A DNA stretch of 64,000 nucleotides from Dimorphilus gyrociliatus (lineage: Eukaryota; Animalia; Annelida), in assembly GCA_904063045.1 (NCBI GenBank), contig CAJFCJ010000070.1:29473-93472 (forward strand), given 5' to 3'. The notes beneath the pieces were generated by a model, which was not told where the DNA came from, ran no database searches, and worked only from the letters and a program-made list of their open reading frames with translations. Both the position numbers and the translations under genes were made by a program. Of this stretch, positions 3,001-62,781 are shown in pieces (position 1 is the first letter of the stretch; each line of letters opens with the position of its first letter).

Positions 3001-4989
3001 CTACACACCTTAGTAATTCAATGCGAAGAGTTATATTAAAATTTCTATTTTCCAATTCATAAATTGGAATATCATAATATTTCCATATATATTCTTTAGT
3101 GGCTGAGTATTCTCTGATGATTTCTGTTTGTTTATCATCAGATTTTATTAATACAGTAATTCTACCATCACCATTAAGCAGATAAAACCGAAAGTAGCAA
3201 TAATTTTGGTTAGAAACTAGATTTTGGTGATAGATATCAATAAAACGTCTTTCATGAAAGTATTCAGAGTGGATGAGTAGTAAATTTCCAAAAGAATTTA
3301 TGTGATTATCAAATGTGTCACCACAGTATCTACGCCTATGTAAAAGAAAAAGTTGGAAAAATGGGAAATGTACATTTCGCATTTATCTTGAAATTGTTAC
3401 AAACCTGGTCTCTGAATTTTAGAGAAGAGTAGTATCAGGTGTTCTGAGAAGTTAGGATCAGTTAATTGCATTTCAATATTTTCATCAAAAATATAGAAAG
3501 CATCCTAGAGATTGAGATGAATAATTGATATAGAATGGGAAAGTGATGATGATAATCATATATCAATACTTACTGTATTAGGCTGTGAAAACAAGAAATA
3601 TGGTATTCCATTTTGAGGAGTGATTATTATATTTTCTATATTTATTGGTGAATTATTCAATAACTGAACTTTAAAAATGAATCCATGAGGAATAGTTATA
3701 GTTAATGAGCATCCAGTATGGAAATTATTTGGCCAAGACAAATCCAAAAATAAATCTCTATCTTTCAAATTATAAAAAGCGCCGATTGAACAAAAAGAAA
3801 TTGGTGAAAAAAGAGATTGTTTGGGAAAATTATATTCAGACATCTGAGAAAATCCTTGAATTAGTCTGATTGAATTTTTATTATTGTTAAAATGACTATT
3901 TCGAATGGAGAATTTATTAAATGTTCCTTTTAAATCTAATCCTACTTCTGTTGTAGATTCTACTAAAATATTGGATATTTCTAATGATGCATTTGAATTT
4001 GATCCAATAATTTGTAAACCACTTGAATTGGATGAAAAATAGGAATCTTTAACAATTGCATAATCATCATTTAAAAATAAATTTAGACCAACACCATGAA
4101 AATGGGCATTTTGAATAAGGTTATTTTTCCCATTTACATTTACAATTGCCTCATTGAATACTGTTGGTAAACAGCTGAAAGAAAGGATTGTTGGTAGAAC
4201 ATCTGCATTTACAAATTTTGTACATTGGTTGAATTGAGTAGCATTGTAGCAATCTAGAATCCAGTCTGTTGTTGAAAAGTTCAATTTTGAGTATGATATT
4301 CCAGCTGTTGATTGTGGATCGGTATTTAGATTAAAATGTTGGCAAACCAGTTGATTTATTTTGAAAAATTGTAAAATACTACTGTTTCTTGTTAAATTGA
4401 TTTGAACAGATTTTTGTAGTCCATCTTCAGAGTTGAATAAGAAAAGTGATATGTTAATTTTTTTAAGTTGAAAATGGCTACTTTCTTGCTTCAATTTTGA
4501 TGTTTTAGTAGTGATTAAAACTCTTTTTTCATTTGGTTTTCCAATATATAATTCTCCATTTACTATCAAATGCTTACCTAGATCAAATGATATCTTTGTA
4601 TTTTGGGATAAAATTTTTAAATCACCATTGATCAGTGTTGTATCTTTGATTCTAACATTTCCACTAAGCTCAACTTTTCCTTTGATATAACCTTCTAAGA
4701 TGGTTGAATCTTTTTGTTTTTTATCAAAATATTTGAGTGTAGTCAATTGGTGATCTGTATAACTTGGTGATAGATTCACTCTAGCCAACAGGCCATTTCT
4801 ATTTCCATCATAGACTTTTGAATAAGGATTTTCATGATTAATGTAATTATGTGTCATATTGAATTGGCATTGATCAATTGAATTTGTATCACAAATGCAT
4901 TGGCAATCTATTTCATAGGTACTTTCTCTATTATCCAAAATATTTCTTGATAGAAAGGGAAAATTCTGTCCTTCCAGTTTCCATTCCAT
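1..4989 (-). CDS. Large multi-exon extracellular protein: parallel beta-helix repeats, C-type lectin, EGF-like repeats, PSI domain (bark beetle/attractin-like domain mix); continues past window start
   Basis: ORFs 3556-4989 and 461-3382 (-). Beta-helix-like Asn/Ser-rich repeats (IRNSHFNNN, ITQCRFSQN) ending in HNWWG; CTL start CGLTGWKYIEKSCYYF..TFNNAKKWC; EGF repeats (CLCNSGWTKSDC, CKCYPGWYGKRC); PSI CKHCTRREGCGWCDTTQKCIPG. GTAAGT..TAG intron 3505-3573; further GTAAGT donors near 540 and 480. Exact exon chain and 5' start not resolved. Confidence 0.75.
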
Positions 4990-6008: not shown

Positions 6009-6529
6009 AAGTACACTATGAAAAATTATTAAGTGAGAAGAAGATATTGAGAATGCAAAAAAAAGTCTACACAGAAATTCAAAAGGAACTGTTTTCCATT
6101 TGGGAAAACTTTAAAGTTGGTGACATCACAGCAAGTCAACTTGTTGAGATGTGTTCTGCTTTATATTATTAAATATGTGCAGTAGTAATTCAACAGTATT
6201 AAAAATATCAAAAATGTTCAAGTCATTTGAAAAATTATGTTCTTAAATAAACTTTTTTACTTGCAATTTCATGGTTTTCATTTTCTCAGATCATTAGTAT
6301 TTAATCAATTAAGAAAAATATATTAATTCCTTTCATCTTCTCTATTCCTATTTAATAATTTTTTTAATACTATGTGGACATTTACTGTTCATTTGTGGAC
6401 ATTTTCTGTCCGTCTGTGGATGTGTTCTGTTCATCTGTGGACATTTTCTGTCCATCTGTGGACGTTTTCTGTCAATTGTGGACGTTTTCTGTTGTGGACG
6501 TTTTCTGTTGTGGACGTTTTCTGTTGCCC
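6009..6529 (+). mobile_element. Right end of a diverged MULE: transposase C-terminus plus repeat-built TIR
   Basis: YEKLLSEKKILRMQKKVYTEIQKELFSIWENF matches the C-terminus of the MULE at 22882-23367 (YKKLLSEKKICRQQRKAYQNIQSKIFSLWEQF); followed by GTGGAC(G/A)TTTTCT repeats ending ..GTTGCCC at 6529. Confidence 0.7.
6372..6526. repeat. Minisatellite (21-bp then 15-bp units, core GTGGACGTTTTCT) forming the MULE subterminal array
   Basis: Tandem units such as TGTGGACATTTTCTGTCCGTC; the ORFs at 6348-6611 and 6374-6574 are translations of it. Confidence 0.9.
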
Positions 6530-7116
6530 ACTTATTATAGAAATGGATTAGAATATGTCTTAAAAAATAAATGAATTCAAATGGTTTTAAAATATCATTA
6601 ACATTTAGCAACCAACATTCATCAGAAAAAATCTCTCTTCCTTTTCAAGATTTTTAAACATTGTACTATTTCTTTGTAAGTAAACAAAATTTAACTAAAA
6701 TATGATAACAAAACTCTAGTCATCCATTTTGAGTAGGTTTGACCTATTCAAAACACTATGGAAACAATGAAACAACACTGGAAGAAAATTGCTGATGGAA
6801 CAAGAATTTGTGATAAATATTGCATTGGAGATAATTATAATAACTTATTCATTGGTGGCAAAGTTGGATCTGCTACTATTTTTACCAACATTTCTCTTAT
6901 CATATCGGCTATTATCACTGCTTTCATAGATTTAAAATTCTAACATAATCCTTATAACAATCTTATAACCTAAATCTATTGTTAGTCAATAGTGGGCATT
7001 TTTTCACAAGCTGTAACTTGAGAGCCATGGCTATTGTCACCACTTTTTTAACAATGACTAATCTATATTATTAATATACACAAACTGGGAGCTGTATTTG
7101 CAAAGCACAAATAAAA

Positions 7117-9353
7117 ATGGCTACGAAATCTAATGATAATGAAACTGAGGAATTGACAGCAGGAACTAGTGATTTAAAATTAGATTCTGAGCACTTTGAA
7201 TGTAAAATAAAAATACCAATAAAACTACTGCTTCATCAAAGGTCAGACAGAACTGTCCTAGACAAAAAGCGCACACCCTTGGATATAGCTACTGAGGATC
7301 ATCCTAATGGAGTATTTTTCTACCCACGACTGGTGGACAATGTAATATTCTTTATATTAACAAGAAATATTTTTATTGTAAAAATTTTATTTATTCTATT
7401 CCATTAAATTTATATAGGTTGGAGACACACAACAAACTATTAAATTATACAGCGATTGGGATAAAGAAAAAAGAATATTTCATTTGAAAACAATAAATCT
7501 CAACTTAGAAAAAAGAAAAATTACCATTTTTCCACGTGACTTTAAAGGAAATGAGGAGAAACCAGGACTTTTAACTTATAGTAAAAATATATATACAATA
7601 CCTTTATTTTAAAAAATCAAGAAATGAAGAAAACATTTCTTTATACATTTAAACAGATATTTCAAAGGATGGCAAATGTGATTTCGAAAAGTCTCAATTG
7701 ATCATTGAATGGAATCAAGATACAAGCATGAATGCAACTTTGGAGGAAAAATTGGATAGAGTTCGGAATATAAGAATTGGAGCATTTAATATTAAAAAGG
7801 GAAAGATTGAGCAAGAAATTTCAAAAGTATTAGACATTTCTTTTGGTATTTTCATCACAATTTAGAATTTCTTTCAGGTCATACAAAATTTTGATTTGCT
7901 TGCCTTACAAGAATTGACAGCTGACCCTATAGATTATGGAAAAATATTGAAAAATTTAAATGAACAGCTAAATGAGAAAAATCAATGTCCATATTACATA
8001 ATAATTGGCGGAAAATTCCACAATGAAAACTCTGCTTATCTTTACAATACAAAATATTTTGTTAATATTTGCAACACTGACAGTAAAGATTTGGATTGTG
8101 CAAAAACATGGGAGGCTGAAGAAGAAAATCATAAAATGTTGATGCATCAATTTTTTCGACCACCACTTATTGTTTCTTTTCAAACAAAATATTGTGAATT
8201 GGATACATTTACCTTTATTTCTTTGCATACTAACCCTAATAAGAATGCAAAAAATAAAAAAATTGGAAATATATTACATTGTTACCCTTCAACAGTTACA
8301 GGGATAAACAATCTTTTCAAATTGTCAAAAGATATAACAACAGAATATCATGATGAGGTTGTGATTCTCTTGGGAAAAAAATATTAGGTCATTCCATACT
8401 ATTTTCAAACAGTAAATTGTAATTTTTTTCAGCATTTTAAAAATTTGATTATTGGTGGAGATCTTAATTGGTCTGAACAATATCTTTCACATGAGCCAAA
8501 TGTACCAGAAGAATTTACTTTACGTACCCAAAGATCAATACCAATCAAATTAAAACAGAAATATATGACAGTATAATAGTAATTTGTTTAGTAATTTCTC
8601 TTATTATTGATATTAAAGTTATACATATATGGAACTGACTTGGAAAAAGCTATAATTAGAAATAGTGGAACAGTTTATTACAACATAACATTCAGTGACC
8701 ACTTTCCAGTTGGATTTGAAATTCAATTCAAGATAAACTTAGAGGAGAAAATTCCTAAAGGAATAATTCATGTTCCATTTCAAAGTGAAAATCAGTTGAA
8801 AAGTTTGCAAGATTATTTTGATCCATTTACATAATGAAACCTCACAATTTTTGATGATATGTGGCAAAAAAATGACTATACATGGCCAAAGATGTATCAA
8901 GTTAAAAAGCATTTTGATAATCATATTTTCAAAAATATTCTTCAAAGCAATTATAACACATTTTTTATGAAGACTTCAATATATATTGTGGACAATAATA
9001 ATCATGGAGAATACTCATGTATTACAGATTCGAAAAGTAATTGCATAATATTTTACACAGAAGAAAATAGATTTGAAGAAGACTGTTGTCAAAAATACAA
9101 AGAGGAATTTATAATACAATTTGTGGAAAATATTCAGGAAACTTATAAATATAAATGTAAATGTGCTGCATTCTACAATGAAAAATTTCAGTTATTTAAA
9201 TGTTACGATATGTCTACAAATGACAAAATCATTTTATATAAAGATGATAGTAAAATTATTAACCAAGGGAAAATATACTATTTCAATTTTCTGGTACAAA
9301 GTGAAATTCCAGATCCTTATGAAAAGAAAAGATGTCAGTTTTCTTCACTTTGA
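7117..9353 (+). CDS. DNase I-family (EEP) endonuclease with long N- and C-terminal extensions, copy A; about 6 exons; several 1-nt homopolymer deletions relative to the minus copies
   Basis: Spliced translation gives ordered DNase I motifs: IRIGAFNI, FDLLALQE, ENSAYLY, FFRPPLIVSF, FISLHTNP, IIGGDLN, EIYDR, SDHFPV. Short GT-AG introns. Frameshifts near 8527, 8570 and 8825-8850 where copies B/C are in frame. Confidence 0.85.
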
Positions 9354-9989
9354 TAAGTACTTTGGATATCATTTGGCAATTGATTTACTAATTTTCTTTT
9401 TTCTTGTTATTGCACAATTTTCATTATATTTTATACTTAAATAATGTTTGGATGGTTCATTATTATCATTTGGATTGTATTTTAATTCTGATTCATTTTA
9501 TGTAAATCTTTTTCAATTGTTTGAAAAGTGCACTTGGAAATAATGCATAATGATATTTAGACCTTAACTATGATAGAACTTTAGAAAGACTTTTCTTTTG
9601 TAGCCATGAAAATGGTGGAACATCGAAAAAGCTTTTATTTCCTAGAAATTATAATGGTGGAAGTTTTGAAAGATTTTTATTTCATAGAAATTTTAGTTGG
9701 GGACTTTAGAAAGTCATATTATTCGCAGGAAATAGATTCTTTGACCATAACAGATGGTGCCACTTTGGAACTAACAAAGGAACAAACAATATAGAAAAAT
9801 GCATGTCAAAGTTGTTACATCTTTTTCAAAAACAGATATGGAAGAGCAGGTTTGCTTTTGAAATGCCACATGCTAACCATTGTGATATAACAGTTTTCAT
9901 GTTTTTGTTGTTCATGCATTATGAGACTGTTACATTTCAACTTTGTAATCCTTTGGCCAAGTGAACTCAAGCTTTTGGAAATGTGTAAA

Positions 9990-10290
9990 AGGAAATACAT
10001 TTCCCAGTTGGCAGTTCAGTTCTTTAACCCTTAGCTGCTTGTTAAAACTTACATGTTTAGAACTAGAAACTCCTTTAATCAATACATATTCTTGAATGAC
10101 ACTGACACTGAACTGGTGTTTGTTGATTGATTTCTACTGAAATTAAATTTCTTGAGACTATTTGTAGAAGAAGTTGAAAGGTTCTGTTTATGTGAGTATT
10201 TTGGTGCATTGATAAATGATTGGAAGGGTGAATATTGTTCTGAAGAAGCAGAAATTCCTACAATTAAATACAACAAAGTACATTCAAAAT
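9990..10290 (+). mobile_element. Copy of the dispersed LINE-like repeat
   Basis: Similar to 5760-6008 (TTTAGAACTAGAAAC..CTCAATACATATTC..GAAATTCCTACAATT..ACAACAAAGTACA). Confidence 0.45.
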
Positions 10291-10462
10291 TCTTTATGTG
10301 GTTTTTAGTTGTTACAGTTATTGAAGCTTAGGCTAAAACAAAGCTTGAAAATAGTATCGGATGCTTTAGATGTTAGTAACTTTTAGTAGGCCTTATCACA
10401 CATTAATTTGGTCTAAAATGCAGTATAAAATATAGTATAAGCTTTTCGAAAATTAACCTCTT

Positions 10463-10584
10463 TTGTTAAAGTTAGATTCAATCACACATGCAAAATATTT
10501 TTCTATTTCTAATAATGAGAGGATCATTATCTTTGCAACAAATCATCAATTGGATTTATTGTCAAAGGGGAAAATTTGGTTCCT
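10463..10584 (+). mobile_element. MULE transposase fragment running into an assembly gap
   Basis: NNERIIIFATNHQLDLLSKGKIWF matches ENDRILIFSTTKQIELLSKGKIWF(MDGTF) of the element at 20897. Confidence 0.75.
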
Positions 10585-11188
10585 NNNNNNNNNNNNNNNN
10601 NNNNNNNNNNNNNNNNNNNNNNNNNNNNNNNNNNNNNNNNNNNNNNNNNNNNNNNNNNNNNNNNNNNNNNNNNNNNNNNNNNNNNNNNNNNNNNNNNNNN
10701 NNNNNNNNNNNNNNNNNNNNNNNNNNNNNNNNNNNNNNNNNNNNNNNNNNNNNNNNNNNNNNNNNNNNNNNNNNNNNNNNNNNNNNNNNNNNNNNNNNNN
10801 NNNNNNNNNNNNNNNNNNNNNNNNNNNNNNNNNNNNNNNNNNNNNNNNNNNNNNNNNNNNNNNNNNNNNNNNNNNNNNNNNNNNNNNNNNNNNNNNNNNN
10901 NNNNNNNNNNNNNNNNNNNNNNNNNNNNNNNNNNNNNNNNNNNNNNNNNNNNNNNNNNNNNNNNNNNNNNNNNNNNNNNNNNNNNNNNNNNNNNNNNNNN
11001 NNNNNNNNNNNNNNNNNNNNNNNNNNNNNNNNNNNNNNNNNNNNNNNNNNNNNNNNNNNNNNNNNNNNNNNNNNNNNNNNNNNNNNNNNNNNNNNNNNNN
11101 NNNNNNNNNNNNNNNNNNNNNNNNNNNNNNNNNNNNNNNNNNNNNNNNNNNNNNNNNNNNNNNNNNNNNNNNNNNNNNNNNNNNNNNN
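10585..11188. other. Assembly gap (N run)
   Basis: 604 N. Confidence 1.
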
Positions 11189-12547
11189 TTAATAGATTCA
11201 CAATTTTTATTTGTCAATTTGCAAGAAATAAATTCAATATGTTTTAAAGTATTTTTTGACTTAGCAATACCAGATAGAATATTTTCAAATTTGTCAACAT
11301 ATCATTTCTATTTCCTGATTTCCAGAGTATACTTGTCATGTTTTTTGGTTTTTAACTAATGCATGGATTTAGGAAAACATGGTTATAGTTTAAAACACAT
11401 GACAATTATTATTATATAAAATTAAACTCTTATCATTCATTCCAATCAGCTAATCTTATGTCATAGACTTCAGATTTAAACGAACTTTAGAATAGCTTCT
11501 ATTTCATACAACTTAGAATGATAGAATTAAAGAAGTAATTCTAATTTCATAAGCAATAGATTTTTAACATAATTGATGGAGCTACTATGGAATTGGCAAA
11601 GGAACAAAGAACAAAAGGATTCTTCATTTTTTTGTTTATTGAAGTTCTAAACCATAATTTATTCAATGTATAGGCATAATTTTGTATAGATTTTATTGCA
11701 ATGGACAACAAAACACTGTAGATTTTTGACAAAATATCTACATTTAATTTCTTTTGAAATACTGCTGTAGTTTCAAATTACATAAGTATCAGTGCTCCAT
11801 CTAACGGAAGATGTAATTAATCTAATTCTAGTAGTGTGAAATAGATATAGGACATTTAAAAAGTAGTTGAGGATTTTTTCTTCATGTGTTTTAAATGGGG
11901 AATGTTCTATCTTTCTTCATTGACTGCAACGACATCTGTTATGAATTATTATACAAAATATTCCAATATTTTCTAATAAATTACAGTGTCATGCACTGTG
12001 TGAAAGAAAACATGTCTTCTACTTTTGGTTTTGATAGATCTCAAATAAATGACTGCTAAGAGTTTAATTGAAATTACTCTGTTGAAATGAAACAGTCTCA
12101 TAATGCATGACAACAAAACATGAAAACTGTTATATACACATGGTTAGCATGTGGCACTTCAAAAGCAAACCTGCTCTTCCATATCTGTTTTTGAAAAAGA
12201 TGTAACAACTTTGACATGCATTTTTCTATATTGTTTGTTCCTTTGTTAATTCCAAAGTGGACCATCTGTTATGGTCAAAGAATCTATTTCCTGCGAAATA
12301 ATGACTTTCTAAAGTCCACAATAAATTTCTATGAAATAAAAATCTTTCTAACTTCCACCATTATAATTTCTAGGAATAAAAGCTTTTTCAATGTTCCACA
12401 TTTTAATGGCTAAAAGAAAGTCTTTCTAAAGTTCTATCTATCTAAGGTCTAAATATATTATGCATTATTTCCAAGTGCACTTTTCAAACTTGAAAAAGAT
12501 TTACATAAATGAATCAGAAAAGTGACTTTTAGTCAGTTAGTCATTGT

Positions 12548-15500
12548 TCAGTGATAATAGGATCTGGAATTTACTTTTTACCAGAAAATTGAGATAGTAT
12601 TTTTCACAGATTTAATAAATCATCTTTATATATAATGATTTTGTCATTTGTAGACATATCGTACATTTAAATAACTGAATTTTTTTGTAGAATGCAGCAC
12701 ATTTACATTTATATTATAAGTTTGCTGAATATTTTCCACAATTTTATTATAATTCTCTTTGTATTTTTGACAACAGTCTTCTTCAAATCTATTTTTCTGT
12801 GTAAATATTATGCAATTTCTTTTCAAATCTGTAATACATGAGTATTCTCATGATTATTATTGTCACAATATATATTGAAGTCTTCATAAAAAATGTGTTA
12901 TATTGCTTCGAAGAATATTTTTGAAAATATGATCATCAAGATGCTTTTCAACTTGATACATCTTTGGCATGTATAGTAATCATTTTTTTGCCACATATAT
13001 CAAACAAATTGTGAGGTTTCATTATGTAAATGGATCAAATAATCTTGCAAACTTTTCAACTGATTTTCATTTGAAATGGAACATGAATTATTCTTTAGGA
13101 ATTTTCTCCTCTAAGTTTATCTTGAATTGAATTTCAAATCCAACTGGAAGTGGTCACTGAATGTTATGTTGTAATAAACTGTTCCACTATTTCTAATTAT
13201 AGCTTTTTCCGTCAGTTCCATATATGTATAACTTTATATATATAAATTAGCTTTTTTTATAGAGCATTTTTGTTTATCATTATTGTTAATTGTTTATTTT
13301 TAAATTTATACAGTTGGTTATTGATAGAGATTCCAAATTGAACATGGCACAAGAGAATGTCAGCTTTGCTGTCATTTATTTAATAATAAAAAATGTTTGG
13401 ATTATAAAGGTTTGTTTAAGTTTTTTGTCACTATCCTTCCTTACAAATATGTTTTTATATTTTTTCACAGATCAATCATTTTATTGTAACATTTGCTGTG
13501 ACATATCAATGAAGAAATGCATTGTTGCACTTCAAAGGCTACTTCTAGTGCATCTGCTAATGAAGAAATAAGACAAACACCAAATTTTGATACAGCAAAT
13601 AATAGAAATGAGCAAACTATTGTTTGTGAAAATCATTGTGGAAATTCAAGTGGAAATGATACAAATGGCAGTATTATGGAATCACACAATGTTTTAGTTG
13701 AAGATCTTCCAGCTCAGCAAAATAATATGATGGAAGTTTCATTTATAGTTTCTCCAAAATCAGATTGTGAGAAAGAAAGTTATTCATTTAAAATCTTAAA
13801 GGGAATGAGCCAGAAAGGAAAAGATTTGCTACTTTTCAACAATTTCTGCTACAATATTAAAGAAAAAAGAAACAAGACAACTTCTGGATATGCAGTGTTA
13901 GGAACAAAAGAAACAAATGTTCAGCAACAGTTAGTCAGCATGGGAACAGTTTTTATCCTGGAAAGTTATCCATTCTCATGAAAGAGTACCTGATTTGGAA
14001 CAAAAAATAATGATTAGGAATGAACTAAAAAATGCTTGTAATAAAGATATCAGTAGTTCAGGAAAACGTTTAGCTGAAGATGTTCTGGTGAAACATTGTA
14101 GTTCTGGTGAAGTTATTCCATCTCTAGATAATTGTACAAGACTGGCAAACTGGACAAGAAAGAAGTTTAGACCAGCTGAACCTCAAAGTATTCACTTCAA
14201 CTTGGCTAAAACTTTTATTCCTGATGATTTTTTACAATGGATATACAAATGGAGAATGATAGAATACTAATATTTTCAACTACAAAGCAAATTGAATTAT
14301 TATCTAAAGGCAAAATATGGTTTATGGATGGCACATTTAAATGTGTGAAAGACCCTTTTTATCAACTTTTTTCTATTCATGGATTTATAAAAAAAATGGA
14401 GAAATAAAACAAATTCCAATGGCTTTTGCTTTTATGGGATCTAAGAGAAAGACAGCCTACAAGAAATTATTTAAGGTACAATAATTTTGCATTTTAAATT
14501 GAATAATCTAATTTGTTAAATTAACAGGCAATACAAGATTTAACAAATGGGCATAGCCCCAAAAAAGTTGTTGTAGACTTTGAAAAAGCTATTTGGAAAG
14601 CACTATCATTCACTTATCCTGAAGCAAACATTAAAGGGTGTGTTTTTCACTGGACACAGGCAATATACAGAAAGATTCAAGTAATACTTTAATTTAGTAT
14701 TTGAGGTCTAGATAGAACTGACATATTTATTTCCAGGAATTAGGATTATGTAAGATGTACAAGGAGAAAAAAGCTGAATATAGAATCATGAAGAAATTAA
14801 TGGCATTACCATTCCTGCCCTCTGATCTGATAGAACCAACATTTAAGACTATTAAAGAAATAAGTCCTATTGAAATGAAGTCTCTATTGGAGTACATTGA
14901 GACACAATGGATAAATGGATTTTATAAACCAGAGGTATGGTCTGTTTATGGTGAGGCTATAAGGACAAATAATGATCTTGAAGGATGGCATCACAGGCTT
15001 AACAAGAATCTTTGCTCTAACACTGCATTCTATTTGCTTTTAGATGAACTGAAAAGAGAAGCTGATCTGATAAAGCTATATAAAAAATTACTGAGTGAAA
15101 AGAAAATTTGTAGACAGCAAAGAAAAGCATATCAGAATATTCAGAGCAAAATATTCAGCTTATGGGAACAATTTGAAATTGCCTCAATTACCTCCCTGGA
15201 CTTACTTGATAAAGCTTCTGACATTTATTCACCAGTTTAAAATACCTTTATTCTTTAATGTTGTTACACTGTTGTCAATCATTCTTGTTATATTGCTTCT
15301 TTTTACTTAATCAATATATTAATATTTAAATATTTGTAATTCTTATTATTCATTTTTTCCTGTCAAATTGCTCTAAAAACTCCATCTATCAAATATCTTA
15401 TATCTTACTTTGAAGTTTTATAATGGACGTTTTCTCCAGTGGACGTTTTCTCCAAGCAGTGGACGTTTTCTCCAAACAGTGGACGTTTTCTCCAGTGGAC

Positions 15501-17073
15501 GTTTTCTCCTGTACCCGTTGTAATAAACTGTTCCACTATTTCTAATTATAGCTTTTTCCAAGTCAGTTCCATATATGTATAACCTTTAATATCAATAATA
15601 AGAGAAATTACTAAACAAATTACTATTATACCTGTCATATATTTCTGTTTTAATTTGATTGGTATTGATCTTTGGGGTACATAAAGTAAATCCTTTTGGT
15701 ACATTTGGCTCATGTGAAAGATATTGTTCAGACCAATTAAGATCTCCACCAATAATCAAATTTTTAAAATGCTGAAAAAAAATTACAATTTACTGTTTGA
15801 AAATAGTATGGAATGACCTAATATTTTTTTCCCAAGAGAATCACAACCTCATCATCATATTTTGCTGTTATATCTTTTGACAATTTGAAAAGAGTCTCTA
15901 TCTCTTCAGCTGTTGAAGGGTAACAATAAAATATCTTTTCAATTCGATTACTTGTTGCTTTCTTATTAGGACTAGTATGCAAAGAAATAAAGGTAAATGT
16001 ATCCAATTCACAATATTTTGTTTGAAAAGAAACAATAAGTGGTGGTCGAAAAAATTGATGCATCAACATTTTATGATTTTCTTTTTCAGTCTCCCATGTT
16101 TTTGCACAATCCAAATCTTTACTGTCAGTGTTGCAAATATTAACAAAATATTTTGTATTGTAAAGATAAGCAGAGTTTTCATTGTGGAATTTTCCGCCAA
16201 TTATTATGTAATATGGACATTGATTTTTCTCATTTAGCTGTTTATTTAAATTTTTCAATATTTCTCCATAATCTGCAGGGCTGACTGGCAATTCTTGTAA
16301 GGCAAGCAAATCAAAATTTTGTATGAGCTGAAAGAAATTCTAAATTGTGATGAAAATACCAAAAGAAATGTCTAATACTTTTGAAATTTCTTGCTCAATC
16401 TTTCCCTTTTTAATATTAAATGTTCCAATTCTTATATTCCGAACTCTATCCAATTTTTCCTCCAAAGTTGCATTCATGCTTGTATCTTGATTCCATTCAA
16501 TGATCAATTGAGACTTTTCGAAATCACATTTGCCATCCTTTGAAACATCTGTTTAAATGTATAAAGAAATGTTTTCTTCATTTCTTGATTTTTTAAAATA
16601 AAGGTATTGTATATATATTTTTACTATAAGTTAAAAGTCCTGGTTTCTCCTCATTTCCTTTAAAGTCACGTGGAAAAATGGTAATTTTTCTTTTTTCTAA
16701 GTTGAGATTTATTGTTTTCAAATGAAATATTCCTTTTTCTTTATCCCAATCGCTGTATAATTTAATAGTTTGTTGTGTGTCTCCAACCTATATAAATTTA
16801 ATGGAATAGAATAAATAAAATTTTTACAATAAAAATATTTGTTGTTAATATAAAGAATATTACATTGTCCACCAGTCGTGGGTAGAAAAATACTCCATTA
16901 GGATGATCCTCAGTAGCTATATCCAAGGATTTGACAGTTCTGTCTGACCTTTGATGAAGCAGTAGTTTTATTGGTATTTTTATTTTACATTTAAAGTGCA
17001 CAGAATCTAATTTTAAATCACGAGTTCCTGCTGTCAATTCATCAGTTTCTTTATCATTAGATTCCGTAGCCAT
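12548..17073 (-). pseudogene. DNase I-like copy B, interrupted by a left-truncated MULE
   Basis: Inverted homologue of 7117-9353; ORFs 16798-17073 and 15818-16309; last exon split; many indels in 12550-13230. Confidence 0.75.
13241..15516 (+). mobile_element. MULE copy lacking the left TIR and ~400 bp of 5' sequence
   Basis: Near-identical to ~21310-23643; right TIR 15422-15516 followed by GTTGTAATA; frameshifted transposase ORFs 13517-15240. Confidence 0.9.
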
Positions 17074-17469
17074 TTTTATTTGTGCTTTGCAAATACAGCT
17101 CCCAGTTTGTGTATATTATTAATGTAGATTAGTCATTGTTAAAAAAGTGGTGACAATAGCCATGGCTCTCAAGTTTCAGCTTATGTAGCCAAGACAAATC
17201 ATTGTAATTGTTGATTGAGTAATTTTATTGAAATTGTTAAAAAAATCACTTTTTATATATTCTTATTGCAACACAAATTGATTTGTTCAGTATAACCACC
17301 TTCCATGAATTTAAGAAAAGAGTGGTTATAACTTGTCAAAAACCACATGACAGTATTGATAATCATAATAATAATAGTATCTAAACTAGCATAGATTTAA
17401 TTAATTTAAATAAATAACTAAAACCAAGTTACATAATGTACTGTTGGCTAACCCTGTTGAATTCCAATT

Positions 17470-17690
17470 GCTCTGTACGCCAGAGACTCTTGGAGCTTTT
17501 TCATTTCTATTATAGAAAGTTTATACAAGATTTGCAAGATGGCTAAACTTCTGTATACAATAATGAAACCAAATGGGAAAAAGGATAAATTACAATGCAC
17601 TGAGGAAGCCAAACAATCATTCTTCAAATTAAGAGATGCTGTAGTTAAGCCCCATGTATTACAACTTCCTGATTTTAGTAGAAACAACTG
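17470..17690 (+). mobile_element. Ty3/Gypsy pol fragment (RT thumb/connection), duplicate of 25600-25822
   Basis: Same sequence as 25600-25822 with indels. Confidence 0.75.
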
Positions 17691-17823
17691 AATGCCAATT
17701 GTCCAATTGACACATTTTGACTGTTTAAATATGCATTATTCCTTTTGCCATTTTTTCAATTTCCCCTCTGCTAACAATTTTTTAAGGTAAAAAAGCTCTT
17801 TAATGTTTTACTAATCAACTTTT

Positions 17824-18997
17824 TCATTTTTTAACATCAATTGTTGAAATTTTTTTCTATTAAAATATGAAAAAAAGAAATCAACACATTCAATTGTATC
17901 AGAGACTTGAAAAAGTTCTATACACATTTCTTCTGCCCCATTTTTGTCAAAATCACCTAAATTAACTTTTTTAATTTTTGAACAGTTTTTCAGTAAATTT
18001 CCAAAATAATCAATTTGTCTCTGTTTAAATTACACAGTTGAAAACTAATTATCTTCAAAGCTTTTGAAATTGGTTAAGTCCATTGCAAATTCTGAAAAAT
18101 CCATTTCCCATATTACTATTATAATTTAAATTGATTTGTTCAATTTTAGAACATTTGCCAAGTAATTTTCCAATCATTATACATCTTTCTTCATTTAAAT
18201 AACAATTTTCAAAATTGATATTTTTTAATGTTTTTGATGATTTTGTAAGTCCTTTACAAATCATCTAATGCAATTCCCATATCATTATTACCTAAATTAA
18301 CTTTTTCAAGATTTTTGCAATTTTCAAATAATTTGCTATCAGTTTACTATCTTCTTTATTTAAACTGCAATATCTAAGAGACACACATTTCAAGGTTTTT
18401 GATGATTTTAAAAGTTCATTGCAAAAATAATCTAATTGATTTTTGTTTCTGTGATACTCATATAAATCAATTGTCTCTATTTCAGAGCAATGTTTTAATA
18501 AATCTCCTAATACTTTGAATAGACCTTCAAATGGACAGATTGAAAATGAAATATTTTTCAATGATTTACATGATGGTAAAAGTCCATTACAAATATCTTG
18601 AGCTCCTTTTACTGAACATTTCTCTAAGCCAGCTTTGATTATTTCTATATTTGAAAAGTGTTTTTTGAGTATATATCCAAATTTTTCACATTGCTTATCA
18701 GTCAAGTTACAGTGTTTAATATCAATCATTTTCAAAGTTGACTTTGAACGAATAAGTCCTCTACATGTTTGTAAGATTCTTGCCCCATGTTTTTTTTCTG
18801 TCTTATTTTGATGGTTTCTATTGAATCACAAAGTCCTAATAATTTCTTAATAGATTCACAATTTTATTTGTCAATTTGCAAGAAATAAATTCAATATGTT
18901 TTAAAGTATTTTTTGACTTAGCAATACCAGATAGAATATTTTCAAATTTGTCCAACATATCATTTCTATTTCCTGATTTCCAGAGTATACTTGTCAT
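17824..18997 (-). pseudogene. Frameshifted copy of the RI-like LRR gene (indels may be assembly errors)
   Basis: Near-identical to 25959-27140; broken into ORFs 18292-18735 and 18055-18264 by 1-nt deletions. Confidence 0.75.
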
Positions 18998-20896
18998 GTT
19001 TTTTGGTTTTTAACTAATAGCCATGGATTTAGGAAAACATGGTTATAGTTTAAAACCACATGACAATTATTATTATATAAAATTAAACCTCTTATCACTT
19101 CATTCCAATCAGCTAATCTTATGTCATAGACTTCAGATTTAAACGAACTTTAGAATAGCTTCTATTTCATACAACTTAGAATGATAGAATTAAAGAAGTA
19201 ATTCTAATTTCATAAGCAATAGATTCTTTAACCATAATTGATGGAGCTACTATGGAATTGGCAAAGGAACAAAGAACAAAAGGATTCTTCATTTTTTTGT
19301 TTATTGAAGTTCTAAACCATAATTTATTCAATGTATAGGCATAATTTTGTATAGATTTTATTGCAATGGACAACAAAAACACTGTAGATTTTTGACAAAA
19401 TATCTACATTTAATTTCTTTTGAAATACTGCTGTAGTTTCAAATTACATAAGTATCAGTGCTCCATCTAACGGAAGATGTAATTAATCTAATTCTAGTAG
19501 TGTGAAATAGATATAGGACATTTAAAAAGTAGTTGAGGATTTTTTCTTCATGTGTTTTAAATGGGGAATGTTCTATCTTTCTTCATTGACTGCAACGACA
19601 TCTGTATATGAATTATTATACAAAAATATTCCAATATTTTCTAATAAATATACAGTGTCCATGCCACCTGTGTGAAAGAAAACCATGTCTTCTACTTTTG
19701 GTTTTGATAGATCTCAAATAAAATGACTGCTAAGAGTTTAATTGAAATTACTCTGTTGAAATGAAACAGTCTCATAATGCATGAACAACAAAAACATGAA
19801 AACTGTTATATCACACATGGTTAGCATGTGGCACTTCAAAAGCAAACCTGCCTCTTCCATATCTGTTTTTGAAAAAGATGTAACAACTTTGACATGCATT
19901 TTTCTATATTGTTTGTTCCTTTGTTAATTCCAAAGTGGCACCATCTGTTATGGTCAAAGAATCTATTTCCTGCGAAATAAATGACTTTCTAAAGTCCCAC
20001 AACTAAAATTTCTATGAAATAAAAATCTTTCTAAACTTCCACCATTATAATTTCTAGGAAATAAAAGCTTTTTCAATGTTCCACCATTTTAATGGCTACA
20101 AAAGAAAAGTCTTTCTAAAGTTCTATCATATCTAAGGTCTAAATATCATTATGCCATTATTTCCAAGTGCACATTTTCAAACAATTGAAAAAGATTTACA
20201 TAAAATGAATCAGAAAAGTGACTTTTAGTCAGTTAGTCATTGTTCAGTGATAATAAGGATCTGGAATTTCACTTTTTACCAGAAATTGAGATAGTACTTT
20301 TTCACAGATTTAATAAAATCATCTTTATATATAATGATTTTGTCATTTGTAGACATATCGTAACATTTAAATAACTGAAATTTTTCATTGTAGAATGCAG
20401 CACATTTACATTTATATTTATAAGTTTGCTGAATATTTTCCACAAATTTTATTATAAATTCCTCTTTGTATTTTTGACAACAGTCTTCTTCAAATCTATT
20501 TTCTTCTGTGTAAAATATTATGCAATTTCTTTTCAAATCTGTAATACATGAGTATTCTCCATGATTATTATTGTCCACAATATATATTGAAGTCTTCATA
20601 AAAAATGTGTTATAATTGCTTCGAAGAATATTTTTGAAAATATGATCATCAAGATGCTTTTCAACTTGATACATCTTTGGCCATGTATAGTAATCATTTT
20701 TTTGCCACATATCATCAAACAAATTGTGAGGTTTCATTATGTAAAATGGATCAAAATAATCTTGCAAACTTTTCAACTGATTTTCACTTTGAAATGGAAC
20801 ATGAATTATTCCTTTAGGAATTTTCTCCTCTAAGTTTATCTTGAATTGAATTTCAAATCCAACTGGAAAGTGGTCACTGAATGTTATGTTGTAATA

Positions 20897-23643
20897 GAAT
20901 TATGGAGAAAACGTCCACTGGAGAAAACGTCCACTGGAGAAAACGTCCACTGATTGGAGAAAACGTCCACTGGTTGGAGAAAACGTCCACTGGAGAAAAC
21001 GTCCACTATGTGAAGAATATATTAAAAAATACTTTTTCAAATTTAAATTTTTATTATTGATTTTGAGATATATCCAATACATTCCCATAATGCAATCACT
21101 TTTGGTAGCCATTTTGAAATCCAGACAGGAAACAGTTCTGGGATCTTCTATGTTTTTCATGGAAAGTGAATATTGTGCATATTTCATCTACAATTTTTCA
21201 GAATTTTTTGCAGTTTGAAATATATTTCACTATTGAAAACCATCAGACAAAACACAAACTTTAGAATTGATATCAGTAAGTTATAGAATATTGTGTTGAA
21301 ATGATTTATTTATAAATTAGCTTTATTTTTATAGCAGCCATTTTGTTTATCATTATTGTTAATTGTTTAATTTTTAAATTTATACAGTTGGTTATTGATA
21401 GAGATTCCAAATTGAACATGGCACCAATTTGTTACATTTGTGAAGAGAGAATATATGGAAGACAAAATCAAGAGAAATGTCAGCTTTGCTGTCATTTATT
21501 TAAAATACATAAAAAATGTTTGGATTATAAAGGTTTGTTTAAGTTTTTTGTCACTATCCTTCCTTACAAATATGTTTTTATATTTTTTCACAGATCAATC
21601 ATTTTATTGTAACATTTGCTGTGACATATCAATGAAGAAATGCATTGTTGCACTTCAAAGGCTACCTTCTAGTGCATCTGCTAATGAAGAAATAAGACAA
21701 ACACCAAATTTTGATACAGCAAATAATAGAAATGAGCAAACTATTGTTTGTGAAAATCATTGTGGAAATTCAAGTGGAAATGATACAAATGGCAGTATTA
21801 TGGAATCACACAATGTTTTAGTTGAAGATCTTCCAGCTCAGCAAAATAATATGATGGAAGTTTCATTTATAGTTTCTCCAAAATCAGATTGTGAGAAAGA
21901 AAGTTATTCATTTAAAATCTTAAAGGGAATGAGCCAGAAAGGAAAGATTTGCTACTTTTCAACAATTTCTGCTACAATATTAAAGAAAAAAGAAACAAGA
22001 CAACATTCTGGATATGCAGTGTTAGGAACAAAAGAAACAAATGTTCAGCAACAGTTAGTCAGCATGGGAACAGATTTTATCCTGGAAAGTTATCCCATTC
22101 TCATGAAAGAGTACCTGATTTGGAACAAAAAATAATGATTAGGAATGAACTAAAAAATGCTTGTAATAAAGATATCAGTAGTTCAGGAAAACGTTTAGCT
22201 GAAGATGTTCTGGTGAAACATTGTAGTTCTGGTGAAGTTATTCCATCTCTAGATAATTGTACAAGACTGGCAAACTGGACAAGAAAGAAGTTTAGACCAG
22301 CTGAACCTCAAAGTATTCACTTCAACTTGGCTAAAACTTTTATTCCTGATGATTTTTTACAAATGGATATACAAATGGAGAATGATAGAATACTAATATT
22401 TTCAACTACAAAGCAAATTGAATTATTATCTAAAGGCAAAATATGGTTTATGGATGGCACATTTAAATGTGTGAAAGACCCTTTTTATCAACTTTTTTCT
22501 ATTCATGGATTTATAAAAAAAAATGGAGAAATAAAACAAATTCCAATGGCTTTTGCTTTTATGGGATCTAAGAGAAAGACAGCCTACAAGAAATTATTTA
22601 AGGTACAATAATTTTGCATTTTAAATTGAATAATCTAATTTGTTAAATTAACAGGCAATACAAGATTTAACAAATGGGCATAGCCCCAAAAAAGTTGTTG
22701 TAGACTTTGAAAAAGCTATTTGGAAAGCACTATCATTCACTTATCCTGAAGCAAACATTAAAGGGTGTGTTTTTCACTGGACACAGGCAATATACAGAAA
22801 GATTCAAGTAATACTTTAATTTAGTATTTGAGGTCTAGATAGAACTGACATATTTATTTCCAGGAATTAGGATTATGTAAGATGTACAAGGAGAAAAAAG
22901 CTGAATATAGAATCATGAAGAAATTAATGGCATTACCATTCCTGCCCTCTGATCTGATAGAACCAACATTTAAGACTATTAAAGAAATAAGTCCTATTGA
23001 AATGAAGTCTCTATTGGAGTACATTGAGACACAATGGATAAATGGATTTTATAAACCAGAGGTATGGTCTGTTTATGGTGAGGCTATAAGGACAAATAAT
23101 GATCTTGAAGGATGGCATCACAGGCTTAACAAGAATCTTTGCTCTAACACTGCATTCTATTTGCTTTTAGATGAACTGAAAAGAGAAGCTGATCTGATAA
23201 AGCTATATAAAAAATTACTGAGTGAAAAGAAAATTTGTAGACAGCAAAGAAAAGCATATCAGAATATTCAGAGCAAAATATTCAGCTTATGGGAACAATT
23301 TGAAATTGCCTCAATTACCTCCCTGGACTTACTTGATAAAGCTTCTGACATTTATTCACCAGTTTAAAATACCTTTATTCTTTAATGTTGTTACACTGTT
23401 GTCAATCATTCTTGTTATATTGCTTCTTTTTACTTAATCAATATATTAATATTTAAATATTTGTAATTCTTATTATTCATTTTTTCCTGTCAAATTGCTC
23501 TAAAAACTCCATCTATCAAATATCTTATATCTTACTTTGAAGTTTTATAATGGACGTTTTCTCCAGTGGACGTTTTCTCCAAGCAGTGGACGTTTTCTCC
23601 AAACAGTGGACGTTTTCTCCAGTGGACGTTTTCTCCTGTACCC
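20897..23643 (+). mobile_element. Complete Mutator-like DNA transposon (MULE), 2747 bp, 9-bp TSD GTTGTAATA
   Basis: TSD at 20888-20896 and 23644-23652; the empty site (reverse complement) is present in copy A near 8690. TIRs made of the 16-mer TGGAGAAAACGTCCAC (6 copies left, 5 inverted right). Confidence 0.97.
21418..23367 (+). CDS. MULE transposase with N-terminal PHD-like finger, FLYWCH and DDE domain; 3 introns
   Basis: MAPICYIC..CQLC..HKKC|..CNIC; FWICS..C..HSH; WFMDGTF, VVVDFEKA, GCVFHWTQA, RTNNDLEGWH. Introns 21533-21593, 22603-22654, 22808-22863. One homopolymer frameshift near 21945 that is in frame in the 13241 copy. Confidence 0.92.
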
Positions 23644-25599
23644 GTTGTAATAAACTGTTCCACTATTTCTAATTATAGCTTTTTCCAAGTCAGTTCCATA
23701 TATGTATAACCTTTAATATCAATAATAAGAGAAATTACTAAACAAATTACTATTATACCTGTCATATATTTCTGTTTTAATTTGATTGGTATTGATCTTT
23801 GGGGTACGTAAAGTAAATTCTTCTGGTACATTTGGCTCATCTAAAAGATATTGTTCAGACCAATTAAGATCTCCACCAATAATCAAATTTTTAAAATGCT
23901 GAAAAAAAATTACAATTTACTGTTTGAAAATAGTATGGAATGACCTAATATTTTTTTCCCAAGAGAATCACAACCTCATCATCATATTTTGCTGTTATAT
24001 CTTTTGACAATTTGAAAAGAGTCTCTATCTCTTCAGCTGTTGAAGGGTAACAATAAAATATCTTTTCAATTCGATTACTTGTTGCTTTCTTATTAGGACT
24101 AGTATGCAAAGAAATAAAGGTAAATGTATCCAATTCACAATATTTTGTTTGAAAAGAAACAATAAGTGGTGGTCGAAAAAATTGATGCATCAACATTTTA
24201 TGATTTTCTTTTTCAGTCTCCCATGTTTTTGCACAATCCAAATCTTTACTGTCAGTGTTGCAAATATTAACAAAATATTTTGTATTGTAAAGATAAGCAG
24301 AGTTTTCATTGTGGAATTTTCCGCCAATTATTATGTAATATGGACATTGATTTTTCTCATTTAGCTGTTTATTTAAATTTTTCAATATTTCTCCATAATC
24401 TGCAGGGCTGACTGGCAATTCTTGTAAGGCAAGCAAATCAAAATTTTGTATGAGCTGAAAGAAATTCTAAATTGTGATGAAAATACCAAAAGAAATGTCT
24501 AATACTTTTGAAATTTCTTGCTCAATCTTTCCCTTTTTAATATTAAATGTTCCAATTCTTATATTCCGAACTCTATCCAATTTTTCCTCCAAAGTTGCAT
24601 TCATGCTTGTATCTTGATTCCATTCAATGATCAATTGAGACTTTTCGAAATCACATTTGCCATCCTTTGAAACATCTGTTTAAATGTATAAAGAAATGTT
24701 TTCTTCATTTCTTGATTTTTTAAAATAAAGGTATTGTATATATATTTTTACTATAAGTTAAAAGTCCTGGTTTCTCCTCATTTCCTTTAAAGTCACGTGG
24801 AAAAATGGTAATTTTTCTTTTTTCTAAGTTGAGATTTATTGTTTTCAAATGAAATATTCCTTTTTCTTTATCCCAATCGCTGTATAATTTAATAGTTTGT
24901 TGTGTGTCTCCAACCTATATAAATTTAATGGAATAGAATAAATAAAATTTTTACAATAAAAATATTTGTTGTTAATATAAAGAATATTACATTGTCCACC
25001 AGTCGTGGGTAGAAAAATACTCCATTAGGATGATCCTCAGTAGCTATATCCAAGGATTTGACAGTTCTGTCTGACCTTTGATGAAGCAGTAGTTTTATTG
25101 GTATTTTTATTTTACATTTAAAGTGCACAGAATCTAATTTTAAATCACGAGTTCCTGCTGTCAATTCATCAGTTTCTTTATCATTAGATTCCGTAGCCAT
25201 TTTTATTTGTGCTTTGCAAATACAGCTCCCAGTTTGTGTATATTATTAATGTAGATTAGTCATTGTTAAAAAAGTGGTGACAATAGCCATGGCTCTCAAG
25301 TTTCAGCTTATGTAGCCAAGACAAATCATTGTAATTGTTGATTGAGTAATTTTATTGAAATTGTTAAAAAAATCACTTTTTATATATTCTTATTGCAACA
25401 CAAATTGATTTGTTCAGTATAACCACCTTCCATGAATTTAAGAAAAGAGTGGTTATAACTTGTCAAAAACCACATGACAGTATTGATAATCATAATAATA
25501 ATAGTATCTAAACTAGCATAGATTTAATTAATTTAAATAAATAACTAAAACCAAGTTACATATATGTAGCTGTTGGCTAACCCTGTTGAATTCCAATTG

Positions 25600-37827: not shown

Positions 37828-38664
37828 NNNNNNNNNNNNNNNNNNNNNNNNNNNNNNNNNNNNNNNNNNNNNNNNNNNNNNNNNNNNNNNNNNNNNNNNN
37901 NNNNNNNNNNNNNNNNNNNNNNNNNNNNNNNNNNNNNNNNNNNNNNNNNNNNNNNNNNNNNNNNNNNNNNNNNNNNNNNNNNNNNNNNNNNNNNNNNNNN
38001 NNNNNNNNNNNNNNNNNNNNNNNNNNNNNNNNNNNNNNNNNNNNNNNNNNNNNNNNNNNNNNNNNNNNNNNNNNNNNNNNNNNNNNNNNNNNNNNNNNNN
38101 NNNNNNNNNNNNNNNNNNNNNNNNNNNNNNNNNNNNNNNNNNNNNNNNNNNNNNNNNNNNNNNNNNNNNNNNNNNNNNNNNNNNNNNNNNNNNNNNNNNN
38201 NNNNNNNNNNNNNNNNNNNNNNNNNNNNNNNNNNNNNNNNNNNNNNNNNNNNNNNNNNNNNNNNNNNNNNNNNNNNNNNNNNNNNNNNNNNNNNNNNNNN
38301 NNNNNNNNNNNNNNNNNNNNNNNNNNNNNNNNNNNNNNNNNNNNNNNNNNNNNNNNNNNNNNNNNNNNNNNNNNNNNNNNNNNNNNNNNNNNNNNNNNNN
38401 NNNNNNNNNNNNNNNNNNNNNNNNNNNNNNNNNNNNNNNNNNNNNNNNNNNNNNNNNNNNNNNNNNNNNNNNNNNNNNNNNNNNNNNNNNNNNNNNNNNN
38501 NNNNNNNNNNNNNNNNNNNNNNNNNNNNNNNNNNNNNNNNNNNNNNNNNNNNNNNNNNNNNNNNNNNNNNNNNNNNNNNNNNNNNNNNNNNNNNNNNNNN
38601 NNNNNNNNNNNNNNNNNNNNNNNNNNNNNNNNNNNNNNNNNNNNNNNNNNNNNNNNNNNNNNNN
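37828..38664. other. Assembly gap
   Basis: 837 N. Confidence 1.
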
Positions 38665-39072
38665 AGGTATGGTGATATTAATGGCGGACAAGAATATGCA
38701 AAACATCATATCGGTCCACTTAGTTGTTCCATGATATTAAAACTTAAAAGTCCGTTAATATTGAATTCTTACTGTAAGAATTACAATTCGTCATTTTTAA
38801 ACGATAACGACTCAACTACTTGTATTAAATTTAAAACTAAATTTGTCAAATTAAAACTCGACTATACTGAAAAGATAAATTTCACCATTGGAAAAGAGAG
38901 CGTTTTTGAAATTCATCCTTATGTGAACACTTCTATTGGAAAGATAAGCTTGTGTAATCAAGATACGCCGACATCTTTCACTTGCAGTAGTTATTCAAGA
39001 TATATATATGTTTCTCTATGGACAACTTTGTCAAACGATATTGAAGTTTGTGAAATTCAAAATTTGACTTGA
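38665..39072 (+). CDS. 3' part of a second copy of the CASPR-like secreted protein; 5' part probably in the gap
   Basis: Translation identical to the C-terminus of ORF 62782-63768. Confidence 0.8.
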   Translation, partial: RYGDINGGQEYAKHHIGPLSCSMILKLKSPLILNSYCKNYNSSFLNDNDSTTCIKFKTKFVKLKLDYTEKINFTIGKESVFEIHPYVNTSIGKISLCNQDTPTSFTCSSYSRYIYVSLWTTLSNDIEVCEIQNLT

Positions 39073-62500: not shown

Positions 62501-62781
62501 TATTCCATCGGAGTTATCTAATTGTCTAAATAAGTGTGAAGACGACAAAGAAAGATAAATTCAATAATTTATCAGAGTGATAAATGGGAAATTAATATAA
62601 AAAAGCTAATAATGTATTATCTTTCTCGATTTATTGTTTCATCTTGTTTTGCTGCAACAGCAATCCGTCCAGACTTTTATTTTACTGTGAGTTCAACCAC
62701 TGGTTGAACACAGACACAAAGAGTCATTTTTGACAAGCTATATACAATGTTATATAAAGAAGAGAACGGTTACGATCGATA

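Follow-up and report, generated by a model that had tools for sequence, protein, structure and literature searches.

Amino-acid replacements with almost no silent change between neighbouring DNase I-family gene copies in Dimorphilus gyrociliatus

We analysed a 64,000-nt stretch of the genome of Dimorphilus gyrociliatus (assembly GCA_904063045.1, contig CAJFCJ010000070.1, positions 29,473 to 93,472 of the forward strand; hereafter the window), which holds three copies, A, B and C, of a gene of the DNase I family. Copies A and C differ in 49 of the 591 codons that align without gaps, and all 49 differences change the amino acid, whereas the introns of the two copies are nearly identical. We consider it most likely, with a probability of about 0.62, that a DNase I-family gene specific to this lineage was duplicated locally and very recently in the window and that positive (diversifying) selection on the protein caused this pattern. 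An earlier sequence-only reading had proposed strong recent positive selection on a nuclease surface. The excess of replacements proved significant, but the divergence of the flanks, a mosaic variant found in sequencing runs and clustered differences between copies B and C point to exchange among more copies rather than to recent divergence by point substitution alone.

Replacements and silent sites in copies A and C

The 49 differing codons contain 56 substitutions. Only three synonymous steps occur among them, all within codons that also change the amino acid, and no codon differs in a wholly synonymous way. From exon 1 to exon 5, the numbers of differing codons are 8, 1, 2, 27 and 2, the eight in exon 1 being six plus two that adjoin a 15-nt in-frame indel (7257–7271, plus strand) encoding LDKKR in copy A only. 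Exon 6 adds at least 9 differing codons (approximately 9–14). Apart from the two codons beside the indel, these numbers reproduce the by-eye counts of the sequence-only reading for exons 1–5, and its statement that purely synonymous differences are absent now extends over exon 6. More than half of the replacements (28 of 49) alter the charge of the residue.

Such a distribution is not expected by chance. When the 56 substitutions were placed at random on the coding sequence with the same type spectrum, wholly synonymous codons numbered 10.8 on average, and zero was obtained in none of the 50,000 trials (P(0) < 2e-5). Exon 4 is not solely responsible for this result, as the 22 changes outside it likewise include no synonymous one (P = 0.004). 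By the Nei–Gojobori method, dN is 0.0425 and dS 0.0107, giving a dN/dS of 4.0 (Fisher P = 0.008) rather than a value of 1 or less, which would have spoken against the selection proposed earlier. The five introns, 326 nt in all, contain a single substitution (7364), a difference in the length of a T run (8422) and a G indel (8617), so that apart from the last item their earlier description as near-identical was accurate. Overall, substitutions affect 64 of 1794 nt in exons versus 1 of 326 nt in introns (Fisher P = 0.00035). Because the replacement excess is significantly above the neutral expectation, neither relaxed constraint nor error can explain the pattern.

Protein family and location of the changes

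A profile built from the window exons and three paralogues matches DNase1L3/DNase gamma (7KIU, E = 2.9e-16) as well as DNase I (4AWN, 1DNK and 1ATN, E of about 1e-10 to 1e-9). Judged by this sequence similarity, the window protein is a member of the DNase I family, which has the endonuclease/exonuclease/phosphatase fold. Single exons and the C-terminal domain produced no Pfam hit, and a paralogue 36% identical to the window protein, P0002, matches PF03372 below the cut-off (20.7 versus 24.5 bits). Over residues 150–418, DNase gamma-like and DNase-1-like clusters were matched by the ESM Atlas model of P0002 (predicted template-modelling score, pTM, of 0.61), with template-modelling scores of 0.54/0.73. 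The motifs LQE, NE(N)SAYLY, SLH, GGDLN, YDR and SDHFP can all be read in copy C. LQE, SLH, GGDLN and SDHFP are identical across all copies, as the sequence-only reading had stated for the catalytic motifs in general; for YDR this holds in B and C only, the motif of copy A as assembled falling in a shifted frame, and NE(N)SAYLY is the same in A and C. The alignment to 7KIU pairs the motifs with catalytic positions up to GDxN. In bovine numbering, the catalytic residues are Glu39 (QE), Glu78, His134 (LH), Asp168/Asn170 (GDxN), Asp212 (YDR) and His252 (SDH).

The N-terminus, MATESNDKETDELTAGTRDLK, appears hydrophilic by eye in all copies and paralogues, and is therefore without a classical signal peptide. 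This by-eye reading suggests that the protein lacks the secretion signal typical of secreted DNase I enzymes and is probably intracellular. The DNase I family fold itself does not require secretion. Compared with DNase I and DNase1L3 (1DNK, 1ATN, 4AWN and 7KIU), the window protein shares the conserved QE, LH, GDxN, YDR and SDH motifs, and its variable segment after QE is the counterpart of the segment through which bovine DNase I contacts DNA and actin. It differs from these enzymes in the apparent lack of a signal peptide, in the presence of additional N- and C-terminal domains without a Pfam match, in the replacement of R41 by T or P, in about 13 additional residues inserted behind His134, and in the lack of a cysteine at the place of Cys173, a partner in the C173–C209 disulfide. 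The additional regions comprise the first approximately 180 and the last approximately 200 amino acids; neither matches any family in Pfam, and an Atlas search with the C-terminal domain gave no credible hit.

The relatives of the gene appear to be few. A HMMER search with exon 4 against 1.84 billion representatives returned four hits, namely the three distant paralogues and one canonical triple DNase I protein. All three paralogues, which are annotated proteins or gene calls and the nearest relatives of the encoded protein, come from the same D. gyrociliatus assembly, GCA_904063045.1; repeat copies at their loci also occur in the window, the best of them with 98–99% identity. Each of these loci is single-copy and so offers no pair in which to look for the replacement pattern again. 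The window's own proteins were not among the results of word-indexed protein searches with P0002, with the profile or with an ORF of 973 amino acids near copy A (see below), and look-ups for the exact products of window ORFs gave no entry.

Within the protein, the changes cluster after the catalytic QE and after the catalytic His, as had been noticed from the sequence, and also in a third patch after GGDLN. Patch 1 (7917–7941, plus strand) reads TADPID..K in copy A and PVSPAD..E in B and C. Inside it, positions 7921–7924 are CTGA in A and TCAG in B and C; these are exact reverse complements within the copy A palindrome CAGCTG, and the difference may be a single micro-inversion instead of four substitutions. 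In patch 2 (8233–8349, plus strand), which follows SLH, 20 of 40 codons (300–339) differ, none of them synonymously. Patch 3 (8488–8523, plus strand) harbours five of the eight mismatches that distinguish B from C over 6.4 kb, and all five change the amino acid.

We placed the patches by profile alignment to DNase I/DNase1L3, with the numbering of bovine DNase I. On this basis, patch 1 corresponds to DNase I residues 41–45, with further changes at 50 and 57. In DNase I, Arg41, Ser43 and His44 contact DNA, and the segment from His44 to Asn56 contacts actin. Patch 2 lies partly in the family-specific insertion (about 13 residues), which follows His134 immediately, and partly in the start of the next helix, and patch 3 follows the residue aligned with Tyr175. 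All three patches would therefore occupy loop positions bordering the active-site/DNA-binding face. An AlphaFold model of P0002, made from an 11-row alignment, reached a predicted local distance difference test score (pLDDT) of 41. Changes are also present beyond the three loops, in the N-terminal tail and in the C-terminal domain.

Gene copies, transcripts and read evidence

The gene encodes about 610 amino acids in six exons separated by five introns of 48–76 nt. Copy A lies on the plus strand at 7117–9353 (exons 7117–7341, 7418–7580, 7657–7826, 7878–8357, 8433–8570 and 8619–9353). Copy C is on the minus strand at 20276–25200 (exons 25200–24991, 24914–24752, 24675–24506, 24454–23975, 23898–23759 and 23710–23644, the last interrupted by a transposon and resuming beyond it with exon sequence at 20887–20276); with the transposon removed, it is an open frame of 613 amino acids. 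In copy B, also on the minus strand (12585–17073), exons 1–6a (17073–15517) are nearly identical to those of C and are followed by a truncated transposon (15516–13242) and, from 13241 downwards, by a second, uninterrupted exon 6 in low-quality consensus. B and C belong to an 8.1-kb minus-strand unit present in two tandem copies (B at ~11189–19761, C at ~18847–27902; 99.5% identity over 6.4 kb), of which A is an inverted partial copy (7008–9941), about 96% identical to both. In self-BLAST and MAFFT alignments, A 7008–8684 aligns with C 25309–23644 and B 17182–15517 at 96% identity.

Copies A and B are arranged tail to tail, with an assembly gap (10585–11188) at the centre. The gap begins 1.2 kb past the stop codon of copy A, so that the compared coding sequence never crosses it; one contig from a DNA run (X1, see below) ceases to follow the window at 10566. 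A very high-copy repeat makes up the 3′ flank of copy A (9483–10343), with a summed contig depth of 86,000 in X1 versus about 600 over the gene. The window as a whole is AT-rich (approximately 28% GC). The published genome of D. gyrociliatus, a PacBio assembly, is compact and its introns are short (PMC7854359). Over 6.4 kb, the B unit differs from C by about 25 single-base deletions and almost no substitutions; this unit, together with the sequence that follows the gap (11189–19761), has the appearance of unpolished long-read consensus.

Read evidence was taken from Logan contigs of one DNA run (X1) and two RNA runs (X2 and X5); such contigs show the presence of a variant, not its absence. Another run, X6, from a different organism, provided only pieces of 20–70 nt and no outgroup sequence. 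That X2 and X5 hold RNA follows from the intron-free contigs in them. All five introns of the gene model are confirmed by spliced contigs in these two runs: in X2, one contig lacks exactly introns 1–4 and other joints lack intron 5, and in X5, one contig lacks introns 1–3 and joints lack introns 4 and 5. The B/C type accounts for the spliced contigs, and the RNA runs also contain A-type contigs, at 10–27% of the B/C depth (3′ end, joints 9320–9486). Both the A and the B/C types are expressed and correctly spliced.

The B/C state was found at every listed site in the contigs of X1, X2 and X5. About 24 sites also showed the A state in X1 DNA and in X2 and X5 RNA, with approximately one-quarter of the depth. 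These sites are 7126–7198 except 7190, 7962, patch 2 except 8251, 8254, 8259 and 8266, and the 3′ end (9320–9486). The A-like contig over patch 2, present in X1 (depth 235 versus 717) and X5, carries the B/C state at the four excepted positions. The runs thus contain a third, mosaic variant, A′, which differs from the assembled A at five exonic sites, all amino-acid-changing; at one codon A, A′ and C form a stepwise series (AAA, CAA and CGA, respectively). Rare variants are lost from contigs, so that A itself may also be present in the samples.

The assembled copy A is out of frame over two short stretches and contains two stop codons as a result of deletions, of 1 nt at 8526, 8570, 8617 and 8825 and of 2 nt at 8849. 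All contigs of the three runs have an additional C at 8526, and the sole X1 contig over 8350–8684 (record 4) has four extra letters and no substitution. The deletions are therefore probably long-read consensus errors. B/C-type exon 6 free of the transposon is present in RNA contigs (X2 record 10). Together with the uninterrupted second exon 6 of B, this makes it likely that an intact B/C-type copy exists.

Transposon and neighbouring features

The interruption of exon 6 in copy C is a 2.75-kb insertion between YYN and ITFSDH (20897–23643, plus strand). It is flanked by a 9-bp target duplication, TATTACAAC, carries inverted subterminal arrays of GGAGAAAACGTCCACTG with a unit of 16–20 nt, and encodes a FLYWCH zinc finger (E = 1.8e-7) and a weak remnant of a MULE transposase (E = 0.0024). 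These features identify it as a Mutator-like (MULE) DNA transposon. Transcripts extend into it (loose end at 8684 in X2). The truncated element in copy B (13242–15516) stops abruptly in the duplicated exon 6 at a short AT-rich overlap. A related array, TGTGGACGTTTTCTGT, is located upstream of copy A at 6373–6526.

Upstream of copy C, within the 8.1-kb unit, there is a single-exon open reading frame (ORF) of 393 amino acids (25959–27140, minus strand) with the look of a leucine-rich repeat (LRR) protein, although it had no Pfam LRR hit at E < 0.01. Its counterpart in the B unit is broken by 1-nt deletions, and copy A has no such neighbour. A second single-exon ORF of LRR-like look, with 491 amino acids and no Pfam match, lies at 27864–29339 on the plus strand; it includes an exact 15-nt tandem repeat (28213–28281, 4.6 copies) encoding a repeated KEIDC motif. 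A short ORF situated between copy C and the first of these LRR-like genes (25586–25822, plus strand) has no Pfam hit and by eye resembles a Ty3/gypsy reverse-transcriptase/RNase H linker. On the other side of the cluster, upstream of copy A, two long ORFs of 973 and 477 amino acids (461–4989, minus strand) probably belong to a single gene, whose product would be a large extracellular protein, rich in cysteine and EGF/PSI-like; a word-indexed protein search with the 973-residue ORF found no relative at E ≤ 1e-20. Farther away, the window contains a 1138-nt inverted repeat with arms at 38665–39802 and 62052–63189, 99.9–100% complementary. The first arm abuts the end of another assembly gap (37828–38664), and the repeat can be read as a young inverted duplication or else as an artefact of scaffolding.

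Weighing the explanations

According to the explanation we favour, young duplicates would diverge by amino-acid replacements while their synonymous sites and introns stay nearly identical, diversifying selection being concentrated in three loops that border the active-site/DNA-binding face and acting also on the N-terminal tail and the C-terminal domain. Exchange of short tracts between copies would probably reshuffle the selected variants and at the same time keep silent sites alike. It is also backed by the five sites that separate A′ from A and by the clustered B–C differences in exon 5, all of which again change the amino acid. The numbers of differences with their significance, the gene model, the expression of both types and the family membership are direct results, whereas we infer that selection is the cause, that the patches lie on the surface and that the copies exchange sequence.

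A number of observations weigh against it. The flanks of A and C have diverged more than the introns (3/109 upstream and 8/462 downstream versus 1/326), which does not fit a simple recent duplication followed by point substitution. Since B is nearly identical to C, there are just two independent sequences and the changes cannot be polarised, the outgroup paralogues being only 30–49% identical to the window gene. About 22 A-specific sites, among them all of patch 1, the lone intron difference and the upstream differences, were unseen in the contigs of the three runs, where they showed only the B/C state; read support for the substitutions of copy A, part of the earlier reading, is accordingly confined to the approximately 24 sites listed above. 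The A-like variant that does appear, A′, is a mosaic. The eight substitutions between B and C in 6.4 kb are distributed unevenly, with five amino-acid-changing ones in exon 5 inside 36 nt. A transposon sits in exon 6 of C and of the assembled B, and A as assembled is frame-shifted, so that possibly no copy is intact. Finally, many indels affect the sequence after the gap: a comparison of 11189–13349 (about 2 kb) with its equivalent in C shows 64 gap openings and not a single mismatch.

Part of this evidence points to exchange. The exon 5 differences form two tight clusters, one of two changes in C (S>L and H>D) and one of three in B (E>K, E>G and R>C), which look like single events copied from other family members. 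Their occurrence on otherwise identical copies suggests short-tract exchange within a larger family; taken with the mosaic A′ and the more diverged flanks, these clusters lean towards some exchange among more copies. Taken further, this could mean that the duplication is older and that the copies evolve in concert, with gene conversion homogenising introns and silent sites and selection only preserving old replacements as islands of divergence, in which case the replacements need be neither recent nor numerous per unit time. We regard this as unlikely. It would account for flanks that are 1.7–2.8% diverged when introns are 0.3% diverged, for the mosaic in the reads and for the clusters of two and three changes. 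On the other hand, conversion tracts would have to be very short to fall between patch 2 codons only a few bases apart, no donor cassettes were found within the window, and the flanks consist partly of high-copy repeats, which makes their divergence a poor neutral yardstick. Even so, the data cannot separate an adaptive burst after a very recent duplication from older copies whose silent sites have been homogenised by conversion.

The state of the assembly raises a different concern: copy A might be wholly or partly chimeric or badly polished near the gap, B might be a mis-assembled second image of C, and some of the differences might be unreal. The indel-rich consensus beside the gap and throughout B, the contigs that contradict the 1-nt deletions of A, the roughly 22 A-specific states unseen in three runs and the way the B transposon breaks off in the duplicated exon 6 at a short AT-rich overlap are all in keeping with such an artefact. 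Errors, however, would not spare synonymous sites and introns, and the unsupported A states in exons are all amino-acid-changing. Moreover, about 24 A states and the A-type 3′ end do occur in contigs of X1 DNA and of X2 and X5 RNA at about a quarter of the depth, and contigs showing presence and not absence limits what the missing states can mean. As a general explanation, an artefact therefore seems to us very unlikely. Still less credible is an account without any selection on the protein, in which the copies are decaying pseudogenes under relaxed constraint or the target of an exon-aimed mutational process. One could cite in its favour the transposon that interrupts exon 6 in C and in the assembled B, the frame shifts and two stop codons of A as assembled, the excess of purine over pyrimidine transitions on the coding strand (25 versus 11) and the 4-nt difference that equals its reverse complement. 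Yet under decay roughly 11 synonymous codons and roughly 12 changes in introns would be expected, and 0 and 1 were observed; no stop codon has arisen by substitution, and both types are transcribed and correctly spliced. As to a mutational process, we know of no exon-only mutator that spares third positions.

Four further candidates were rejected. GC-biased gene conversion would have hit introns and third positions too, and conversion from the distant paralogues would have imported synonymous differences, as silent sites are saturated at that distance. An overlapping reading frame was dismissed because no other ORF of at least 100 amino acids overlaps exon 4 on either strand, and a hidden overlapping gene is thus not the cause of the silent-site conservation. 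An adenine-specific pattern like that of diversity-generating retroelements does not apply, since all four bases change, in both directions.

If diversifying selection is indeed the cause, its agent may be sought in a conflict. The cluster might be a nuclease-based conflict system, in which an intracellular DNase I-like effector has the loops at the rim of its active site driven to change by a binding partner, although we consider this specific scenario quite unlikely. The co-duplicated LRR-like neighbour could be a cognate inhibitor, the whole then being a toxin–antidote or self/non-self element in an obligately inbreeding worm. Alternatively, the partners could be viral or transposon inhibitors, and the nuclease would then be a restriction factor. 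With respect to the pair formed by RNase A and ribonuclease inhibitor, the likeness is limited to an LRR-like ORF that lies beside B and C, has no Pfam LRR hit and is missing beside A.

Relation to known systems and significance

Young duplicates with this kind of divergence have precedents. In the venom genes studied by Nakashima et al., introns and untranslated regions are reportedly nearly identical. As in snake venom-gland phospholipase A2 and other venom families, we find young local duplicates in which coding sequence changes faster than silent sites. Unlike in those families, the gene encodes a DNase I-family enzyme apparently without a signal peptide, in a non-venomous meiofaunal annelid, and the comparison involves only two independent sequences, with a more extreme ratio (49:0) over a very small silent divergence. 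For habu venom genes, KA/KS values above 1 have been documented (PMC6062510, with reference to Nakashima et al. 1993, 1995), a pattern known as accelerated evolution. The window gene also resembles a primate family in that exon divergence far exceeds intron divergence in duplicates. In that family, morpheus/NPIP of apes, described by Johnson et al. in 2001, exons of segmental duplicates are said to diverge many times faster than introns. The protein and the clade are different, morpheus has far more copies, and its function, too, is unknown. The pattern reported here is therefore a strong but previously known kind of sign of positive selection, resting on two sequences from a poorly assembled region. 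Our literature search found no paper on DNase I-family genes with such accelerated replacement, and the D. gyrociliatus genome paper does not mention DNases (PMC7854359).

Should the signal hold with more copies or species, it would be among the most extreme whole-gene replacement excesses reported, with about 50 replacements and almost no silent change. Its target would be unusual as well: a probably intracellular DNase I-family nuclease restricted, according to the databases searched, to one miniature annelid with a compact genome. The loops around the active site of this nuclease would form a defined set of candidates for partner binding. For D. gyrociliatus, a developmental model species, the finding would, if true, point to an unrecognised genetic conflict, whether in immunity, in transposon control or with a selfish element.

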